Part shown: piece after piece, positions 47,865 through 57,923 of the stretch | Position numbering within the stretch: the first letter of the stretch is position 1 | Layout of the letters: each line of letters opens with the position of its first letter | Origin: Macrostomum hystrix | Taxonomy: Eukaryota; Animalia; Platyhelminthes | DNA: 64,000 nt | Reading direction: 5' to 3' | NCBI GenBank assembly: GCA_950097015.1 | Contig: CATNEN010000032.1 | Location: forward strand, 620,001-684,000 | Notes under the pieces: generated by a model | The model's database searches: none | Seen by the model: the letters and a program-made list of their open reading frames with translations, nothing else | Told to the model about the DNA's origin: nothing | Position numbers and translations under genes: made by a program

Positions 47865-47983
47865 ATTGGTCGATGAATCTGATGCTGACTTGCTGCATAA
47901 AAAGTCGCCATTCATTATTCAAGCTGGCAAGTGTGAATTAAAAAATCACAAATTACAATTGCTAACAAGCTACACAGGTAAGC
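47865..47983 (+). promoter_or_regulatory. Candidate promoter and non-coding first exon of neuropeptide gene 1
   Basis: Reverse CCAAT (ATTGG 47865-69), TATA-like CATAAAAAG (47896-904), strong donor CAG|GTAAGC at 47978 that could splice to the acceptor at 48494. Confidence 0.45.
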
Positions 47984-48059
47984 TGTTGCTTTTAGTGAAA
48001 ATTAATTGATATTCCTACAGTTAGTGTTTATGCTAGTCTTAGCAGTTTAAGTATTTCTA

Positions 48060-48336
48060 GGCAGTTGTAGCCTTGTGGTTAGAGCTCGGACTCACGACTG
48101 GAAGGTTGGGGGTTCGATACCAGACTCCACTGGAACAATTTGTGTCACTCAGCAGACACTTAAACTCTGCATTGCTTCAGTTCACCCAGCTGCTAGATGG
48201 GTGCCAGCATCGGCTGGGGTAATTGAAATTGGTGTGGCGTCCTCCCAGTCCATGGACTGAACACCCGTACGCATAGCTGCGACTGTGCTGTTGGCTGCAC
48301 ATATGACCCGATAGGAACAGGTGCAATCAATCATTA
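48060..48336 (+). mobile_element. tRNA-derived SINE family A with a Nin/Deu-like central domain
   Basis: A-box-like TAGCCTTGTGGTTAG, B box GGTTCGATACC (48111-21), body GACACTTAAACTC...CATTGCTTCAGTTCACCCAGCTG...ATGGGT, short (CAAT) tail. Confidence 0.75.
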
Positions 48337-48515
48337 CTCACAAAATGATCATTCTATTCCACGAAGGGCCAAGCACCCTGTGAGAGTGTGACGCCTGTGA
48401 TTGCTCAGGGGTCAGCAGAATGTGCAGAATTGTCTCGTAACTTTAAAGCAAATCAATTGAGCTTGCTCATTTTCTCAAAAGTTTATTCAAACAGCCAGAC
48501 AAGCTCGCGAGAACA

Positions 48516-49726
48516 ATGCCAACAAAGCGAACTCTGCTGGCTGAGCTGCCGCTGCTGCTCCTGTGCTGCGCCCAGCTGTCCTTGGCAGCTCCGCTTGAGC
48601 AGCCGGTCAACCGCGAGTCCGCCAACGACGTGGAACTGACGGCGCCGTTCAACTCAAACCAACCGTTAGAGCCGACCCGGGAGAAGTTCGTGTTCTAGTA
48701 ATTCTAACAGTTCTAGGTGTTCTAATAGTTCTAGGTGTTCTAATAGTTTTAGGTGTTCTAATAGTTCTAGGTGTTCTAATAGTTCTAGGTGTTCTAACAG
48801 TTCTAGGTGTTCTAATAGTTCTAGGTGTTCTAATAGTTCCAGGTGTTCTAATAGTTCCAGGTGTTCTAATAGTTCTAGGTGTTCCAGGTGTTTCATAACT
48901 TGAATCGAACAGTTTTATAACAATAGTATGCTGAGATTTAAACCTTCGTATTTCATTCTACGCCCGGCTGGACATGGTCTAAAGGTAGCAATTAAATATG
49001 ATTACGGGAGAGAATTAAAATGTCATTTTAAATGGGTGTTTACTGCTGTTTACTTAAGTGTGGATGTTTTCTTAAGTGTGGCTTACTTACATTACTACTG
49101 AATAAGCAGCAGTAGCGTGAGTTGCACATTACCATTTTTTTCATTCCGTCCCTCAAAACAATTTGACAGCTTCGGCGAGGTTAAGCGATCGGCGAAGGAT
49201 TTCAACGCGGCCAGACTGCTGGCCAGGCTGGCGGATTTTAAGGCCAAGAACGACTTCCTGACACAGCGGATTCGGTGAGGCTAGCGGGGTGTATACACTG
49301 CCTAGAGTAGGGTGTTTACACTGCCTAGAGTAGGGTGTTTACACTGCCTAGAGTAGGGTGTTTACAGAGTCTAGAGTAGGGTGTTTACACTGCCTAGAGT
49401 AGGGTGTTTACACTGCCTAGAGTAGGGTGTTTACACTGCCTAGAGTAGGGTGTTTACACTGCCTAGAGTAGGGTGTATACACTGCCTAGAGTAGGGTGTT
49501 TACACTGCCTAGAGTAGGGTGTTTACACTGCCTAGAGTAGGGTGTTTACACTGCCTAGAGTAGGGTGTTTACAGAGTGTAGAGTAGTGTGTTTACAGAGT
49601 GTAGAGTAGGGTGTTTACAGAGTCTAGAGTAGGGTGTTTACAGAGTCTAGAGTAGGGTGTTTACACTGTCTAGAGTAGTGTGTTTAATTTAACAGCCTCA
49701 TTAAAATGCATTTCAGCATGGGCTGA
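48516..49726 (+). CDS. Neuropeptide precursor 1 (NPY/NPF-like, RIRM-amide), 87 aa; join(48516..48664,49170..49274,49717..49726)
   Basis: Signal peptide MPTKRTLLAELPLLLLCCAQLSLA; KR site followed by SAKDFNAARLLARLADFKAKNDFLTQRIRM-G-stop; last intron is phase 2 inside the Arg codon (CG|GTGAGG...TTTCAG|C). The exon 1 donor could be the alternative phase-2 GT ~21 nt downstream. Confidence 0.82.
48698..48893. repeat. 18-bp minisatellite (GTTCTAATAGTTCTAGGT) in precursor 1 intron 1
   Basis: ~11 copies. Confidence 0.93.
49287..49682. repeat. 23-bp minisatellite (GGGTGTTTACACTGCCTAGAGTA) in precursor 1 intron 2
   Basis: Period 23 (49321 to 49344), ~17 copies. Confidence 0.95.
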
Positions 49727-50083
49727 GCACAGCTGCTCAAAGGCCAGAATGATTCAAGCATCATCGGCTGAGTCGACTTTGACTAAAAAACAATCAAAAA
49801 GATCGCATAGCTGATGCTTATGCTACTGCCGTGGAACAATGCTGCTGATGAAAACAAAATACAAAATTCTGAAACTGCTGAATAATTTGCACGCCTACGC
49901 GATGGCTTTTCTTGTTGGAGTTTATTCTCTTCTCTGATTTAACAGTTTCTTAGTAGGCAATTTTTTTTGCTAAAGTTTGTAGAACAAAGTAGAAAACTTC
50001 ACGAAACACTTATTACAATTTACCCAGAAATTCTCATGGACACATTTGCCATTCTGATTCGAAATAGAATCAATAATTTCAGA

Positions 50084-51434
50084 ATGGCTCAGTCAACAAG
50101 CGGACGTCGATTGGTAGCTTTTATCCTGATCATACAAATGCTTCTCACCTGGACCACTGGACTGGGATTCAAGGTGGACTATGCTGCTCGCCCCTCGGCA
50201 ACGTGCCAAATTACTTCACCGTCTTTTGACGATTGGGATTCTGAGTGAGCTGGGAAAACTGCATTTGTTTTTTAAAGTTAACTGTAGTTCACTCTCACAA
50301 AGCTGCAACAGTTCACTCTCACACTGATCTAGCAGTTCAGTCCCACACTGATCTAGCAGTTCACTCTCACAAAGCTGCAACAGTTCACTCTCACACTGAT
50401 CTAGCAGTTCAGTCCCACACTGATCTAGCAGTTCAGTCCCACACTGATCTAGCAGTTCAGTCCCACACTGATCTAGCAGTTCACTCTCACACTGATCTAG
50501 CAGTTCAGTCTCACACTGATCTAGCAGTTCACTCTCACACTGATCTAGCAGTTCACTCTCACACTGATCTAGCAGTTCAGTCCCACACTGATCTAGCAGT
50601 TCAGTCCCACACTGATCTAGCAGTTCAGTCCCACACTGATCTAGCAGTTCAGTCCCACACTGATCTAGCAGTTCACTCTCACACTGATCTAGCAGTTCAC
50701 TCTCACACTGATCTAGCAGTTCACTCTCACACTGATCTAGCAGTTCAGTCCCACACTGATCTAGCAGTTCAGTCCCACACTGATCTAGCAGTTCACTCTC
50801 ACACTGATCTAGCAGTTCACTCTCACAGTGATCTAGCAGTTCACTCTCACACTGATCTAGCAGTTCACTCTCACAGTGATCTAGCAGTTCACTCTCACAC
50901 TGATCTAGCAGTTCAGTCCCACACTGATCTAGCAGTTCAGTCCCACACTGATCTAGCAGTTCAGTCCCACACTGATCTAGCAGTTCAGTCCCACACTGAT
51001 CTAGCAGTTCACTCTCTCTGGTCCAGCAGTTCACTCTCTCTGGTCCAGCAGTTCACTCTCTCTGGTCCAGCAGTTCACTCTCTCTGGTCCAGCAGTTCAC
51101 TCTCTCTGGTCCAGCAGTTCACTCTCTCTGGTCCAGCAGTTCACTCTCTCTGGTCCAGCAGTTCACTCTCTCTGGTCCAGCAGTTCACTCGGCTCCGCAT
51201 TGCAGTGAGCTGTTCAGCCGGCCCCAGCGGGAAGAGCCAGACGAAGCCATGCGGCAGCAGCTGATGGAGAAGCTGATGGATATGTACGCCAGGCAAAAGT
51301 TTTTGCGCAATCGCATCAGGCCAGTGAAGTTTCTAAATTTTGCTTGCATGAACTGCTCTATCCTCGGCATCCTACTCACAAGCCAAAATGAACGCTAATT
51401 TCGATATACTTTCAAAAATTTCAGAATGGGCTGA
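50084..51434 (+). CDS. Neuropeptide precursor 2 (NPY/NPF-like, RIRM-amide), 94 aa; join(50084..50244,51206..51319,51425..51434)
   Basis: Signal peptide MAQSTSGRRLVAFILIIQMLLTWTTG; RPQR then EEPDEAMRQQLMEKLMDMYARQKFLRNRIRM-G-stop; same 3-exon, phase-2/phase-2 layout as precursor 1; last intron is GC-AG (AG|GCCAGT...TTTCAG|A); AATAAA at 51481. Confidence 0.8.
50286..51190. repeat. 24-bp (GCAGTTCACTCTCACACTGATCTA) grading into 22-bp (GCAGTTCACTCTCTCTGGTCCA) minisatellite in precursor 2 intron 1
   Basis: Direct inspection; the unit switches near 51005. Confidence 0.96.
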
Positions 51435-51480
51435 GGCGCCGAGCAGGGTCTGAGGTTCTCGCTAGTGTCATCGGTGCTCT

Positions 51481-51486
51481 AATAAA
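51481..51486 (+). terminator. AATAAA polyadenylation signal of precursor 2
   Basis: Canonical hexamer 47 nt after the stop. Confidence 0.6.
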
Positions 51487-51759
51487 ACAGGCGCGCTGTG
51501 CGGTGGGCATCAGTTTACAGCAACGTCACGTGACTGAAGTCCTGTCAATAATCTGTTACAACTATCGACTAAACAAACTGATATGAAGTTACAAAAGCAT
51601 CCTCTTTCTTTTAAATAAAGTCAATTCGCTTAAAGCAACACAGGAAATCAGTTTAGCTAATTTATTAATGATCTGCATCTTTAAAATCAATCGATCAATG
51701 CGGCATTAACAGGAAATAAAATTTGGAGATCGAATTTGAAGATCGTTAGTCATCGAGTA

Positions 51760-51882
51760 TGTTAGACATTCAGGCTGTCAGGCATTCAGGCTGTTAGACA
51801 TCGAGGCTGTTAGGCATTAAGGCTGTTAGTCATCGAGGCTGTTAGGCATTCAGGCTGTTAGACATCGAGGCTGTTAGGCATT
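51760..51882. repeat. 16-bp minisatellite (AGGCTGTTAGRCAT..) with alternating variants
   Basis: ~7 copies. Confidence 0.88.
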
Positions 51883-52350
51883 AAGACACGCATTAGCAGC
51901 GCATTTGCTGATTAATTCAGTTATGCGGGCAGCGCAGTTTTTAACAAGAGGGTCATTGTCACCTGCTGGCAGACGGCCTTGTGTAATTTCTAGCAAAGAT
52001 TGTCTAAAATAAGCGCACTGCCTGCATTGTGTGAACCCCCTTCTGAAGCAGCAGCAGTCAGGCCGACCACGAAGAACAATTAAAAAAGCCAAGAGGTTGC
52101 CCGCATCGGCATTCTACCTGAGGATTCACACCAGAATTCACCCCGCCGTCTTCCCGATGGTTTAAAAAGCTGCTCCTCTGATTTCTGAGCTCCCTAGAAA
52201 AATGTTTCAACTCCACTTGCTGAATAAGACTCACTTTATTATTGCAGCGACAGTTGTTTTAACCCACTGCTCAGCAATGCATGCGGGTACACTAGGCAAC
52301 GCAGCAGATTGGCTGAATACGATTGCTATTGACGAAAAATTGATCACCTA

Positions 52351-52855
52351 AGGTGGAACTAAACAACCAACCAACCAACCAACCAACCAACCAACCAACC
52401 AACCAACCAACCAACCAACCAACCAACCAACCAACCAACCAACCAACCAACCAACCAACCAACCAACCAACCAACCAACCAACCAACCAACCAACCAACC
52501 AACCAACCGAGCGGTTAACGCGTTTGCCTCTCGCACCAAGGTCCCTGAGTTCGATTCCACGGTGAGGCCACATTTATTTGGGGAGCAGCATCGGAGAGAA
52601 GGCATCGGGGTTTGTCGTGAAATTTACGCCCTTGAGGGCCAACCCCCAAGGCACAGTGAGAGTGTACACTGCCTGACGATGAGAGAGTCAGCGCAGATGT
52701 ACACACCTGTGTGAGCATATGTCTGAGTACGGTATTTGTGTGCGTGTGTGCTCAGGAGTCAGCGAAATGGGCAGAATTGCCTCCTCGCTGGCTGCGGGTC
52801 TCGTTCACTAAATGATGTGCCATTGCCCGCAGCCCTCCTGCAATTATTATTATTA
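52351..52855 (+). mobile_element. tRNA-derived SINE family B, copy with an (AACC)n array in its 5' head
   Basis: GTGGAAC...(AACC)n...GAGCGGTTAACGCG (A-box halves), B box GAGTTCGATTCC (52547-58), (ATT)n tail; colinear with 27721-28040. Confidence 0.8.
52362..52508. repeat. (AACC)n microsatellite
   Basis: ~36 perfect copies. Confidence 0.97.
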
Positions 52856-53783
52856 AGCCTTATTCACACACCCTGCGATGCGTCAAGTCCTGAACTGTGC
52901 ACTGCATAGAGCCTCATTCACACACCTCGCAGTGATTAACGAAGCGCCAATAATCATATGAAGCTAGTCATATTGAATTTTGGAAAGTTTGACAAAGTCA
53001 TTCTACAGGCAGATAAAATATATAGGCGGAAATGGTGGTTCAGAGAGCCGGGACACCCCAGGCCTTCAATCAAGGCCTCCGGTCTTAAGTTGGGCCTAAT
53101 TGAAATCGCAGGCAGCGGAGGTGCCAAAAACGGCAGCGGACAAGACGATCCCGACAAAGGCAGCGGTGCTCTAAAAATAGGCACTGATAAAAATGTAATA
53201 ATGCCGCTGCCAGGGGCTCAGATGGCCATAATGCGGAGGCGGCATTCTCAAATTCTCGGCCAGAGGGGAGAGTGAGTGATGATCTTCCGCTCAAAGTTAG
53301 CTCAATAAAACCTTGGCGCGCCCGACAAGCCATGCCCGATGATGCGCGGAGTCTGTGCAAGCCCGATTGAGCTCAGAAGAAAATGCTGGCTTTAAAAATA
53401 AACTATGAAAAGCTGGCATGGCATCAAGCAGTGTCCCCCCAGCTCACCTCCTAAGGCGAGGGAGGGCCAATCGCTGACCGGTCGGACGCTCTCGATCCAG
53501 AGCATCAATTCAAGTGGCAACGGCTTAAAAGGTGGGACCGGGTCTTCGATTGCCAGCAGTTTTCACAGGTGCAGTGGCAAGATCAGTCAGGTGAAATAAC
53601 TTTGAAATTAGATTATAATTATAATTAGATTATAATATTTAGATACGATCGCTACTCTAGTGCGGAATACTGAACTTACTGTGAGTGCAGCAGTGTTGAA
53701 TACTATCTTTGTAGATTGTTATCGAAATGTTGGTGCTCAACTGCAGCCCAAACTATTTCAGGATTCTCAAAATGCAGACCACA

Positions 53784-54164
53784 ATGAGGCCAGTCTCGCG
53801 TCTGGCGACTGTTCTCCTCCTGCTGCTGGGCTGCCTGCTGCAGATCAGCTGTCGGCCAGTTCAGAGCCGGAGCCTGGACTTATCGTCTCCGCTGGCTGGC
53901 GCCGACATCGGCCAGTCTGACATCGCGAAGGAGGCGTCGCCAGTGGATGAGGGCGGTGCAGTCGCAGATGTCAAGCCCTGGTGGCTGCCTCGGGGCGGGC
54001 CGCACAGCGCCAAGAAGAGCTCCATGAAGGAGCTGCTGAAGCACTGGGTTCTGTATCAGAGACCGAGGTAACAGTTCGGTGGCGCTATTTGAGCAGATCC
54101 TTCATCGAATCGAAATCAAACTCATGCCTCAAGCGCCGATTCAATTTGCAGATTTGGAAAATAA
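53784..54164 (+). CDS. npf: Neuropeptide F (NPF/NPY family) precursor 3, RPRF-amide, 98 aa; join(53784..54067,54152..54164)
   Basis: Signal peptide MRPVSRLATVLLLLLGCLLQISC; ...KKSSMKELLKHWVLYQRPRF-G-K-stop; 84-nt phase-2 intron in the Arg codon (AG|GTAACA...TTTGCAG|A). An alternative in-frame ATG lies at 53772. Confidence 0.88.
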
Positions 54165-54792
54165 ATGGCCCAGCTCGGCTGAACGTTGTCGCCAGCCAGA
54201 TGCCCTGCAGTGCCAGATGTCACTGACAAGCCGACTGTTAGGTTAGGCGGCGGAGATGAAATACTAGCTAAATATGCAGATGCCCACATTTTACTAACAT
54301 TTCTGAGTCTTTTTGAAACAATAAAATCTTTTTGAAACATAAATGGATTCAGTGAGAGTAAAATATTAAGCGTGTTCTTATCGTTCCATCAAGAAGCCAT
54401 TTTGATCCGTGAGACGGTAGGCAACATGCAGTGGTACACAGCGTCTCATCAACTAATTTGTTATCAGCTGGACCGGTCTACAACACTAGCTTTCAACATT
54501 TATGTAAAAAATGACACCAATAAATCTCTGTTACAGAGATATTTATAAAAGAAGCTATGAAAATTGGCTCATCGTAGGTATATTCTTTTACGAATACTTA
54601 CATTAATATATCTACAAATATCAGCATGGGCTCTTTTCCTTAGTTAGATGAGCACACATGCACAGATGCGTACAGAGACACCCCCGTGATGTCAGTGTTT
54701 GAAGTCAGAAGTTCATACGCTTTGGCGAACAATGCCAGATTTCTTCATGGATCTGCGCATCATCGATGGCCTGTGTGTGCGGACTCTTGATG

Positions 54793-55200
54793 CCTGGATG
54801 TTTTCCATGTTGTGGTGCCTGTTTTTCGCGTTGTGATGCATGTTTTCCATGTTGTGATGGCTGTTTTCCATGTTGTGATGGCTGTTTTCCATGTTGTGAT
54901 GGCTGTTTTTCATGTTGTGATGGCTGTTTTCCATGTTGTGACGGCTGTTTTCCATGTTGTGATGCCTGTTTTCCATGTTGTGACGGCTGTTTTCCATGTT
55001 GTGATGGCTGTTTTCCATGTTGTGATGCCTGTTTTCCATGTTGTGACGGCTGTTTTCCATGTTGTGATGCCTGTTTTCCGCGTTGTGATGGCTGTTTTCC
55101 GCGTTGTGATGGCTGTTTTCCGCGTTGTGATGGCTGTTTTCCGCGTTGTGATGGCTGTTTTTCATGTTGTGATGCCTGTTTTCCGCGTTGTGACGGCTGT
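54793..55200. repeat. 21-bp minisatellite (TTTTCCATGTTGTGATGGCTG)n between the convergent NPF genes
   Basis: ~19 copies; stop-free unit gives ORFs in several frames. Confidence 0.95.
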
Positions 55201-56251
55201 TCTGCAGTCCGAGGCCTTGGCCAGAGAGCGACGTCGTTTGAGGCGATGGTTAAGACCGTAGGTGACATGCACTCTCAGGTGCACGGAGAACAGCCTGTTA
55301 GATGGAACAATAGGCCAGTGGCCAGTTCGCAATACGTACTACTTTAACAGCACTAATGTACTCCGTCAGCGTCCTTGTGAATGATAAACTCTCTACTCAA
55401 TCACGAAATCTCGGCGCTCGATCATCGTATTGCGCTAGTAGAAACCAGAGCTCAGGTGTTAAACACTCAAGAAAACTATTAGCAAAAAAACAGTTCATAA
55501 GCCTTTCATCTGAATCTCACTGGGAAACAATTTCTATACTGCTCCGATTCGCTCCAAATAACAATGAATAAGGCAAGATACTCGTAGTAAATTTTAAAAG
55601 AATTTACGATGAAAAATGCTTTTAACCGTGCATGCCATTTTTCTACGGTCGAGGCATTCCGTTAGCTTTCTCCTCCCTCTGGATTTCAAGCTAAAATGTT
55701 CTGCTCAGAGACACTTATCACGCCTCATTGCGTGAGCTAGTACGCAGTCGGGGGGGGTAGAGTCACAGAGCGGGAGGCCAAGCAGCACCTACAGCTGCAA
55801 TTCGAAGCTGGGAAAACAAAAGGAGTTCTCGGAGAAATCGAACGCAGCTTTGATCCCAGGATGGGATCACTACGACGAGAGGTTTTGGAGTATTATCCGT
55901 ATTGAAGTGGGGAATACAAAAAAATTAGAAAAAAATAATTTTTCAAAACCATTTCTGCGGAGGTGGTGAAATTTGTTGCCTCTCGCCGTTGGATTTCAGC
56001 ACACGACAAATTATTTAATTTTGCGCGCGTTTCAGCTTATTAAACATGCTCGCATTGAAAGCTTTATTTTTAACAAAAACGCTAAAAAAGCGACCCTTAG
56101 GACGGTTCGACCCTCATGTACATGCCGAACATTCAACATCTCATCGGCAGAGCTGAAAATTAATCAATTTAATGAGGTCCTCTTCAGAACTGGTCCTTCT
56201 TTCTTCGATGACAAGATGCTCGAGTCTCAACCAATATCTGTCGTTATTTCA

Positions 56252-56786
56252 CTATCCAAATCTGAAAATATTACGCGCATGGTAAAGATGGCATTATTAC
56301 TAGCGTTCATGGCGGTGAAATGTGATTGATCAAGCCTACAGCTGCCAACACAGCTGCCTGTTACCTGATAGCTTGCATTTGATATTTGCATACAGTAGCT
56401 GATGCTTTTGAAAGATTCGAGTCTTGTACATATCGAAGTGCACCAGTTTTGCTTAGCAGATTAGGTGTCTTGCCTTTTCGAGTAAAAAGTAATTTAATTG
56501 GGCCTCACCTGGGCCGCTGGTAGAGGACCCAAAACTTCAGGATATCGTCAACGCTGCTCTTCCTCTTGCTCCCAGCTGTCGCGCCTTGCGGCTGCCACCA
56601 GCGGTTACGCCGGACGACTACCTGACCATCGACCGCGTCGCCTGACTCACGTGGCAGCTCAGGATTAGCGGCTTCGGCGGCGTGGCGTGCGCTATTGTGT
56701 GCGTTGGTGTCGTATAGACTTCGGGCGCAGACCAGAGTGCAGACGCACTGCAGCAGGACCAGCAGAAATAGTTGCTTGACAGTCAT
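56252..56786 (-). CDS. npf: Neuropeptide F (NPF/NPY family) precursor 4, RPRF-amide, 95 aa; complement(join(56252..56261,56509..56786))
   Basis: GCCGCC-ATG; signal peptide MTVKQLFLLVLLQCVCTLVCA; ...KRKSSVDDILKFWVLYQRPRF-G-stop; 247-nt phase-2 intron in the Arg codon (AG|GTGAGG...ATTTTCAG|A); minus-strand AATAAA at 56063-68. Confidence 0.88.
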
Positions 56787-57923
56787 GGCGGCTTCAACGT
56801 AATACCTTTTCCCGCTACGGAAAAAACAATCTGGAAGTCTCTTATTGACGAAATCCAGCCCAGATTTTCTGGATGGCTTGGGCTTACAACTGATGCGGAG
56901 CCTCGCCCCCAGTTACTGGTGGCAGTTGCGCGCGCTTTGTTTGATTGGTCGGATGCGCAGTTGGCAGCCTTCGCCCACGCAGCGGATCAGCGAATCTGTG
57001 AGACTCACTCACTCTGTGGTTGAGTGAAGCACTGACACCATTGACGCAGTGCAATAACTAATTCAATCGCGATTTCAAGTGATTGTCACGTTTAGTGCGT
57101 CACAAATGACTAAAATGGGGCTAAATCGTTCGTCAATAAACACAGTCTACAAGCCGCATTTTTTTTGAGGTGCATTAGAAATCTTAGAATGTACTCGTAT
57201 TATTTTATTTCTAAGGCAGCTTTTTTAAAACAGGTGCTTTACTATTTTAGAGTCGTTCTTAATCCCTGAAAAGCATGGAAATTGATCTCAATGTTTATTT
57301 CGCGCGAAAATAAAGAGCGTGTGTACGAAAGTAGAGCCTGACAGTCGTGTAGGTAGGAATAGCCGCAGTTGAAACAGTTTTAGAACGAGTGTAGGTGTAA
57401 GCCTCATATTTGGTTAACAAAATTAATTACAGTAGCCACATCGGCAGTCTACAAGCACTCGAGTTGGCCTAGCTGTGAACACGAGTTAGAGAACCCATAT
57501 TCGAGTCGAAATTTGCCCATACCTCAAGCGTCACCAAAGCAGCAAAAAACTAGACAAAACACGGGCAATTATTCAATCTCAAATTTTCACTCGCATCGCC
57601 GGGGCTGGGTGCATGGCTGCTACAGAAGAACTTGCACCCAGCGGGTGGGCCGCCCCGCGCCCCGGGTTCCAGTTAATAGCTGGGTGGCCTGGCTTGTCAA
57701 GGTACAAGCAGCTGTTGCATCTCTGCCTGCTAAACTGCCCTGCGTTACCGGCGCCAAGTCTGAAATTATTTTTAGAAGCGCACCAGAAACCACCGCATCG
57801 AACAGCCCACCACGGCATCGCGTGGGCCTCCAGGTGACAGCTGAGGGGGCAAGCCGGAAATAAAATATTATAAAACCTGTCGCCAAACGTACCTGGCCAA
57901 ACAGTTGACACCAGCGCTTACCA

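Follow-up and report, generated by a model that had tools for sequence, protein, structure and literature searches.

In NPY/NPF genes across phyla, a conserved intron lies between the second and third bases of the Arg codon in the C-terminal RF/RY (PMC7314547), and the same split-Arg intron occurs in ten planarian npy genes, including npy-11 with its non-aromatic RPRL-Gly end (PMC2953531). The C-terminal criterion used for the family is R-x-R-F/Y followed by Gly as the amide donor (PMC6389622). Here we describe four genes, g1 to g4, located within 8.3 kb (positions 48516-56786) of a 64,000-nucleotide stretch of Macrostomum hystrix DNA (contig CATNEN010000032.1, positions 620,001 to 684,000; hereafter the window, in whose numbering all coordinates are given). 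A preliminary description of the locus had taken it for a cluster of NPY/NPF-type neuropeptide precursor genes; its two background premises, that an intron in this Arg codon characterizes NPY/NPF genes and that flatworms have expanded NPF families, agree with the published record (PMC7314547 and PMC2953531 for the first, and the 11 npy genes of Schmidtea for the second). The cluster is confirmed to hold four real, small, spliced genes for secreted peptide precursors. Our favored interpretation, to which we assign a probability of roughly two thirds, is that of a tandem cluster of four functional neuropeptide-precursor genes, all of them built on the NPY/NPF gene plan.

The nearest described counterparts are the genes npy-1 to npy-11 of Schmidtea mediterranea (Collins et al. 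2010, PMC2953531), which, like g1-g4, form a multigene set of small precursors with one amidated R-x-R-X peptide each and an intron within the codon for the penultimate Arg. Planarian NPY-7 and NPY-10 lack a C-terminal flanking peptide, their precursors stopping at Gly or GKR, a layout similar to that of g1-g4, and planarian NPY-1 is cut internally at KK to a short amidated end, as detected by mass spectrometry (PMC2953531), which resembles the cut proposed below for g3 and g4. The end L-Y-x-R-P-R-F-G is common to g3, g4, and planarian npy-4 and npy-6. For g1 and g2, the non-aromatic npy-11 (RPRL-amide) provides a published atypical precedent, and their predicted peptides of 30-31 residues are comparable in length to the 28-30-residue NPY-8 and NPY-3. 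Features that set the Macrostomum genes apart from the planarian ones include a spacer of 35-55 residues before the peptide in all four, and the RIRM-amide end in g1 and g2. Tandem clustering of the Schmidtea npy genes is not reported in the text of PMC2953531 examined here. Canonical NPY/NPF genes (vertebrate NPY, PYY, and PP; the NPF of Moniezia expansa; mollusc, annelid, and arthropod NPF) share with g1-g4 the phase-2 Arg intron and the single peptide per precursor, and with g3 and g4 also the R-x-R-F-amide end.

The gene models were assembled at the exact junctions proposed in the preliminary description, after reading of window positions 48300-57000. All four spliced translations are complete and free of internal stops, so that the proposed set of four spliced genes (+,+,+,-), each with a signal peptide, a spacer, and an R-x-R-[F/M]-G end, translates cleanly. 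The common layout consists of a signal sequence, a non-conserved spacer, a basic site, and a single C-terminal peptide that ends in R-x-R-[F/M]-Gly and is followed by a stop codon, or by Lys-stop in g3. Signal peptides were judged by eye: all four N-termini show a basic n-region, then a hydrophobic core and a cleavage site of small residues. On the plus strand, g1 (coding positions 48516-48685, 49170-49274, and 49717-49726) encodes 94 residues ending in ...KR-SAKDFNAARLLARLADFKAKNDFLTQRIRM-G-stop, with the peptide end ...FLTQRIRM; g2, on the same strand (50084-50244, 51206-51319, and 51425-51434), also encodes 94 residues and ends in ...FLRNRIRM-G-stop. The 102-residue product of g3 (53772-54067 and 54152-54164, plus strand) ends in ...KK-SSMKELLKHWVLYQRPRF-G-K-stop, with the peptide end ...HWVLYQRPRF, and the 95-residue product of g4 (56786-56509 and 56261-56252, minus strand) ends in ...KRK-SSVDDILKFWVLYQRPRF-G-stop, with the peptide end ...FWVLYQRPRF.

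The last intron of every gene is in phase 2, between the second and third bases of the Arg codon that precedes the final Phe or Met. Because this intron splits the final Arg codon, the terminal coding exon is just 10-13 nucleotides long, in all four models as had been claimed. One extra phase-2 intron is present upstream of the peptide in g1 and g2. The last introns of g1, g3, and g4 are of the GT..AG type, and that of g2 has a GC donor. The donors of g1, g3, and g4 (G|GTGA or G|GTAA) place a stop codon directly after the Arg, and thus the unspliced reading of these three genes ends in ...R-x-R-stop without the Gly. Since the splice donor itself supplies a stop codon, the amidated end escapes ordinary reading of open reading frames unless the 10-13-nucleotide last exon is added. 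The earlier expectation that annotation based on open reading frames would miss such genes fits the outcome of database searches: exact look-up of the four precursors in a collection of 15 billion proteins returned none of them, and a homology search with g3 in a large protein collection gave nothing at E<=10.

The terminal mini-exon motif by itself is not rare, with seven occurrences on both strands of the 64-kb window against an average of 3.3 in shuffled sequence. When a suitable R-x-(Arg, two bases) donor is required as well, together with an open reading frame within 500 nucleotides upstream, four occurrences remain in the window, and these are exactly g1-g4; in 200 block shuffles of the window, the full pattern has a mean of 0.36 and a maximum of 3. 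No fifth member of the cluster was found in the window, even in scans permitting any last residue.

The structure of g1 was verified by RNA contigs aligned to window positions 48450-50285. Both of its joints, 48685/49170 and 49274/49717, each of the GT..AG type, occur in contigs of three runs (X8 and X12 of one study, X4 of another). The second joint was read as 49273/49716 with a one-base ambiguity and equals 49274/49717, the junction for which the preliminary description had suggested an RNA check. Because the contigs carry both joints, the whole g1 model is confirmed. The first coding exon (48482-48685, with the ATG at 48516) contains the signal peptide and spacer and is joined to position 49170 in contigs from X8, X12, and X4; the second (49170-49274) contains the KR site and the peptide through the first two bases of the last Arg codon; the last (49717-49878) supplies the third Arg base, Met-Gly-stop (coding 49717-49726), and the 3' untranslated region, with the X8 contig reaching 49878. 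In addition, the 41 loose letters with which the X4 contig begins ahead of 48480 match window positions 47946-47975 exactly, and g1 therefore has a non-coding 5' exon at about 47935-47977 (its start is approximate), joined to 48482 by removal of a GT..AG intron at 47978-48481 (donor ACACAG|gtaagc and acceptor aaaag|TTTATT, as read from the sequence). A TATA-like element, CATAAAAAG, is located at 47897-47905, about 30 nucleotides upstream of the first 5'-exon base in the X4 contig (about 47935). Expression of g1 was also observed in a related species (organism B, run X9), where a contig has the first g1 intron removed. It differs from the window at three positions (48557, 48587, and 48632), all of them third-position synonymous changes in Leu14, Ala24, and Val39 by manual codon count.

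The g2 gene is expressed and is trans-spliced to a spliced leader at 50082|50083. The 22 letters ahead of position 50082 in the X12 contig, together with the G at 50082, are identical to the last 23 bases of the 35-nucleotide spliced leader of Macrostomum lignano (PMC8629364), a sequence highly conserved in M. cliftonense and M. hystrix (PMC10468722), which places the genome within Macrostomum. A spliced-leader acceptor, ttcag|, stands ahead of the first g2 exon (50083-50244, with the ATG at 50084), and the X12 contig covers 50082-50244. Behind 50244, the same contig has a 252-letter loose end, and since its 30 visible letters equal the first 30 bases of exon 2 at 51206, the first g2 intron (joint 50244/51206) is confirmed as well. 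The second exon (51206-51319) contains the RPQR site and the peptide through the first two bases of the last Arg codon. The donor that follows it is CAG|gccagt, that is, GC and not GT, which corrects the preliminary description. The predicted terminal coding mini-exon (51425-51434) supplies the third Arg base and Met-Gly-stop, with an AATAAA at 51481-51486. The terminal AUG of the spliced leader sits three nucleotides ahead of the g2 AUG and out of frame with it, and on the g2 mRNA it opens a reading frame of about 50 codons that ends within exon 1; with this AUG upstream and out of frame, translation of the g2 precursor would therefore need leaky scanning. At position 50181, the X12 RNA contig has G where the window has A, which by manual codon count changes Tyr33 to Cys in the g2 spacer and is probably a strain polymorphism.

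In these contigs, g1 is not trans-spliced and begins with a 5' exon of its own. The g2 acceptor is on the same strand, 204 nucleotides past the final g1 position covered (49878; interval 49879-50083). In M. lignano, two genes have been counted as an operon when under 1 kb separates them and only the second of them is trans-spliced (PMC8629364), and the g1-g2 pair falls under this definition because the genes are 204 nucleotides apart on the same strand and only g2 is trans-spliced. From this arrangement, the two paralogous neuropeptide genes may be co-transcribed.

The first coding exon of g3 (53772-54067) contains the signal peptide, spacer, a WWxPxG motif, the KK site, and the peptide through the first two bases of the Arg codon. 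Its terminal coding mini-exon (54152-54164; third Arg base and Phe-Gly-Lys-stop) would follow a canonical GT..AG intron, with an AATAAA at 54320-54325. In the paralogous g4, on the minus strand, the first coding exon (56509-56786) would likewise be joined through a canonical GT..AG intron to a predicted mini-exon at 56252-56261, which supplies the third Arg base and Phe-Gly-stop. The share of sampled g3 words is 0.64-0.72 in several RNA-like runs versus 1.00 in a DNA run (organism A). The expected share is about 0.69-0.72 if the mRNA starts at one of the acceptors at 53745/53761 and lacks the 84-nucleotide intron, and about 0.92 if it is unspliced; thus the observed values fit, as indirect evidence, a spliced g3 mRNA without this intron.

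A motif W-W-x-P-x-G is conserved between g3 (53973-53990, plus strand) and g4 (56585-56602, minus strand), ahead of the KK/KRK site, and may be a sign of a longer mature form of 32-35 residues or of a second product. The motif recalls the W-R-P-Q-G of luqin. A luqin-like reading of g3 and g4 was set aside, because the motif is followed by neither an amidation nor a cleavage site and C-terminal cysteines are absent.

Within each pair, the genes are paralogs. For g3 and g4, none of 2000 shuffles aligned as well, and the two share about 59% identity over their last 34 residues and about a quarter elsewhere. BLASTP of g1 against g2 gave no match; with the last five residues removed, their peptides are aligned as well by 1 of 2000 shuffles, and the two genes are alike in precursor length and in three-exon structure. 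The end F-L-x-x-R-I-R-M-G of g1 and g2 is encoded with five synonymous codon differences (in the F, L, R, I, and R codons), and the end W-V-L-Y-Q-R-P-R-F-G of g3 and g4 also with five (in the V, L, Y, R, and P codons). Because the codons within each pair differ synonymously, conservation of the peptide ends acts at the protein level.

The split-Arg intron, the hallmark of NPY/NPF genes, is found in all four genes, confirmed by RNA for g1 and seen in the sequence for g2 (with its GC donor), g3, and g4. The ends of g3 and g4 are RPRF-G(K)-stop, with the aromatic residue present, and those of g1 and g2 are RIRM-G-stop. On a profile built from nine planarian NPY peptides taken from the supplement of PMC2953531, g3 scores 11.6 bits and g4 9.7 bits, whereas shuffles that keep the last six residues score 4.8-5.0 +/- 1.6 and reach these values in 0/500 and 1/500 cases, respectively. 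The g3 peptide aligns without gaps to the last 15 profile positions (ELLKHWVLYQRPRFG versus kLNeyfaIyGRPRfG). By these scores, g3 and g4 weakly resemble planarian NPYs. A protein language model places g3 exon 1 among precursors of peptide hormones from several families, with 12 pancreatic-polypeptide clusters among its neighbors, which we regard as a lead only. Each precursor contains a single peptide copy; NPY/NPF peptides are generally longer than 28 and typically 36-40 residues, and the predicted lengths are 30 and 31 residues for g1 and g2 and 18 or about 32-35 residues for g3 and g4. By their predicted features, g3 and g4 are divergent, short NPF-type genes. The tie of g1 and g2 to NPY/NPF would be carried by the intron, the R-x-R-X-Gly end, the length of 30/31 residues, and the linkage to g3 and g4. 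The RIRM pair most probably branched off long ago from the stock of g3 and g4, keeping the split-Arg structure and losing the aromatic end, as happened in planarian npy-11.

In the favored interpretation, the peptides would be produced as follows. Each precursor would enter the secretory pathway by its signal peptide, and a prohormone convertase would cut at the basic site, which is KR in g1, RPQR in g2, KK in g3, and KRK in g4. The terminal Lys of g3 would then be trimmed, and the exposed Gly would be converted to a C-terminal amide. The predicted products of g3 and g4 have 18 residues and an LYQRPRF-amide end, with a longer form of about 32-35 residues should the KK/KRK site stay uncut; the predicted products of g1 and g2 have 30 and 31 residues, respectively, and an RIRM-amide end. 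Computed [M+H]+ values of the predicted amidated peptides are 3479.92 for g1, 3955.97 for g2, 2317.28 for g3, and 2268.23 for g4, and the long form of g4 has a value of 3850.05. The peptides would act on G protein-coupled receptors of the NPY/NPF type or of a related RFamide type.

Several observations weigh against this interpretation. The last junctions of g3 (54067/54152) and g4 (56509/56261) are predicted ones, and the predicted last junction of g2 (51319/51425) depends on the GC donor, four nucleotides downstream of which a weak GT donor at 51323/51324 would yield a different, non-amidated end. In g1 and g2, Met occupies the position where the family-defining residue is Phe or Tyr, giving the aromatic amide. 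Planarian NPYs keep a Y-L-x-x-L-N-x-Y core and G-R-P-R and match Pfam PF00159 (Hormone_3), with positive controls at 8.4e-13 for NPY-1, 6.5e-7 for NPY-8, and 2.2e-6 for NPY-11, whereas none of g1-g4 matches this model at E<=10. On the planarian NPY profile, g1 and g2 score no better than shuffles (63/500 and 65/500). Canonical NPY/NPF peptides, of 36-40 residues, have N-terminal prolines and conserved Y, L, Y, and I residues, and neither these prolines nor the Y-L-Y-I pattern is recognizable in g1-g4; the canonical peptide directly follows the signal peptide and precedes GKR and a flanking peptide, in contrast to g1-g4, where a spacer separates the two and the flanking arrangement is likewise not recognizable. 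The expectation of an amphipathic helix was tried and rejected: at 100 degrees, none of the peptides has a hydrophobic moment above that of shuffled sequence. Finally, likeness between the two pairs is not reliable: against the long form of g3, it is equaled in 57/2000 shuffles for g1 and 84/2000 for g2, and against g4 there is none. With the pairs lacking reliable sequence likeness, what argues for one duplication cluster is shared gene structure and linkage. The preliminary description thus stands in part. Its two paralog pairs, RIRM and RPRF, are borne out by the shuffle tests, while their descent from one local duplication series gains no reliable support from mutual likeness; its NPY/NPF assignment agrees with the Arg intron in four of four genes and with the above-shuffle scores of g3 and g4, and finds no echo in PF00159 or in the scores of g1 and g2.

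A variant of the NPF-type origin goes further for g1 and g2. We consider it tentatively, as somewhat doubtful, that the RIRM-amide pair forms a distinct, undescribed family that arose from an NPF-type gene and kept only the split-Arg structure, with a Met-amide end and its own receptor, and that g1 and g2 make up a two-gene operon in which g1 has its own promoter and 5' exon and g2, 204 nucleotides downstream, is resolved by spliced-leader trans-splicing.

A rather unlikely explanation is that the RIRM pair or all four genes represent a lineage-specific family of amidated peptides not derived from NPY/NPF, in which the Arg intron and the R-x-R end are convergent or come from another RFamide-type family. 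The silence of PF00159 for g1-g4 in spite of its matches to true planarian NPYs, the shuffle-level scores of g1 and g2, the lack of significant likeness between the pairs, and the differing precursor layout, with a spacer before the peptide and no flanking peptide after it, all point this way. It has to contend with an intron whose position and phase are the same in all four genes and the same as in the NPY/NPF hallmark, with the physical linkage of the four genes within 8.3 kb, and with the canonical RPRF-Gly end of g3 and g4. Features of the sNPF and PrRP types also count against it. The sNPF and PrRP types resemble g1-g4 in the R-F-amide-like end and, for the 18-residue form of g3 and g4, in short length. 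The sNPF peptides have 8-10 residues and an M/T/L/F-R-F(W)-amide terminus, and one precursor usually carries several of them (PMC6389622); an sNPF identity was rejected, since g1-g4 have a single peptide of 18-31 residues ending in P-R-F or I-R-M. In PrRP-type genes, the peptide is interrupted by a phase-1 intron, placed N-terminally or centrally (PMC7314547), and this identity was rejected too, the sole intron within the g1-g4 peptides being of phase 2 and in the last Arg codon. With the NPY/NPF gene plan preferred for the cluster, the two pairs would share a common descent with each other and with NPY/NPF.

It is very unlikely that g1-g4 encode small secreted proteins of another role, antimicrobial or glandular, and not neuronal signals. 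The basic 30-residue peptides of g1 and g2 could in principle be membrane-active, but the hydrophobic moment is not raised, and both the single C-terminal Gly-stop or Gly-Lys-stop after R-x-R-X, with its basic cleavage sites, and the confinement of strict conservation between old paralogs to the last 9-13 residues follow the pattern of amidated neuropeptides. Decay of g2 and g4 into duplicates that no longer make the predicted peptide, suggested by the GC donor of g2, the out-of-frame spliced-leader AUG three nucleotides before its start codon, and the knowledge of g4 from sequence alone, is highly improbable given that neither reading frame is broken, that codon changes within the peptide ends are synonymous and leave those ends conserved, that g2 is expressed with its first intron correctly spliced, and that a chance match of the GC-donor product to the R-M-G-stop of g1 is estimated at about 2 in 100,000.

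Full-text literature searches for the peptide ends (LYQRPRF, NRIRMG, and RIRMamide) found nothing, and no paper describing g1-g4 or the Macrostomum neuropeptide complement was found, with McVeigh et al. 2009, the likeliest prior source, lying outside the search. The four genes are best read as new members of a known and already expanded flatworm family, with the RIRM pair atypical among them, and the advance is incremental in that large, partly atypical NPY families of flatworms were known before. Regeneration and reproduction are studied in Macrostomum as a laboratory model, and gonad maintenance in planarians is controlled by one NPY-family peptide, NPY-8. The exact gene models and predicted masses make the g1-g4 peptides directly testable, and the RIRM pair offers a case for how far an NPF-type gene drifts while its intron is kept.

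Some other sequence features of the region were observed. Two tRNA-like stretches, at 48075-48140 (inside the intron of the g1 5' untranslated region) and at 52510-52570, are probably derived from short interspersed nuclear elements; ARAGORN and Rfam reported nothing in 44-60 kb of the window, both stretches included. Minisatellites unrelated to one another make up most of the intron sequence of g1 and g2, with an 18-mer repeated 10 times (48702-48884), a 23-mer repeated 17 times (49287-49686), and a 24-mer repeated 38 times (50286-51190), the last array being in the first intron of g2. Between the genes there are a 21-mer array of 19 copies at 54795-55201 and a (CAAC)x36 array at 52364-52508.

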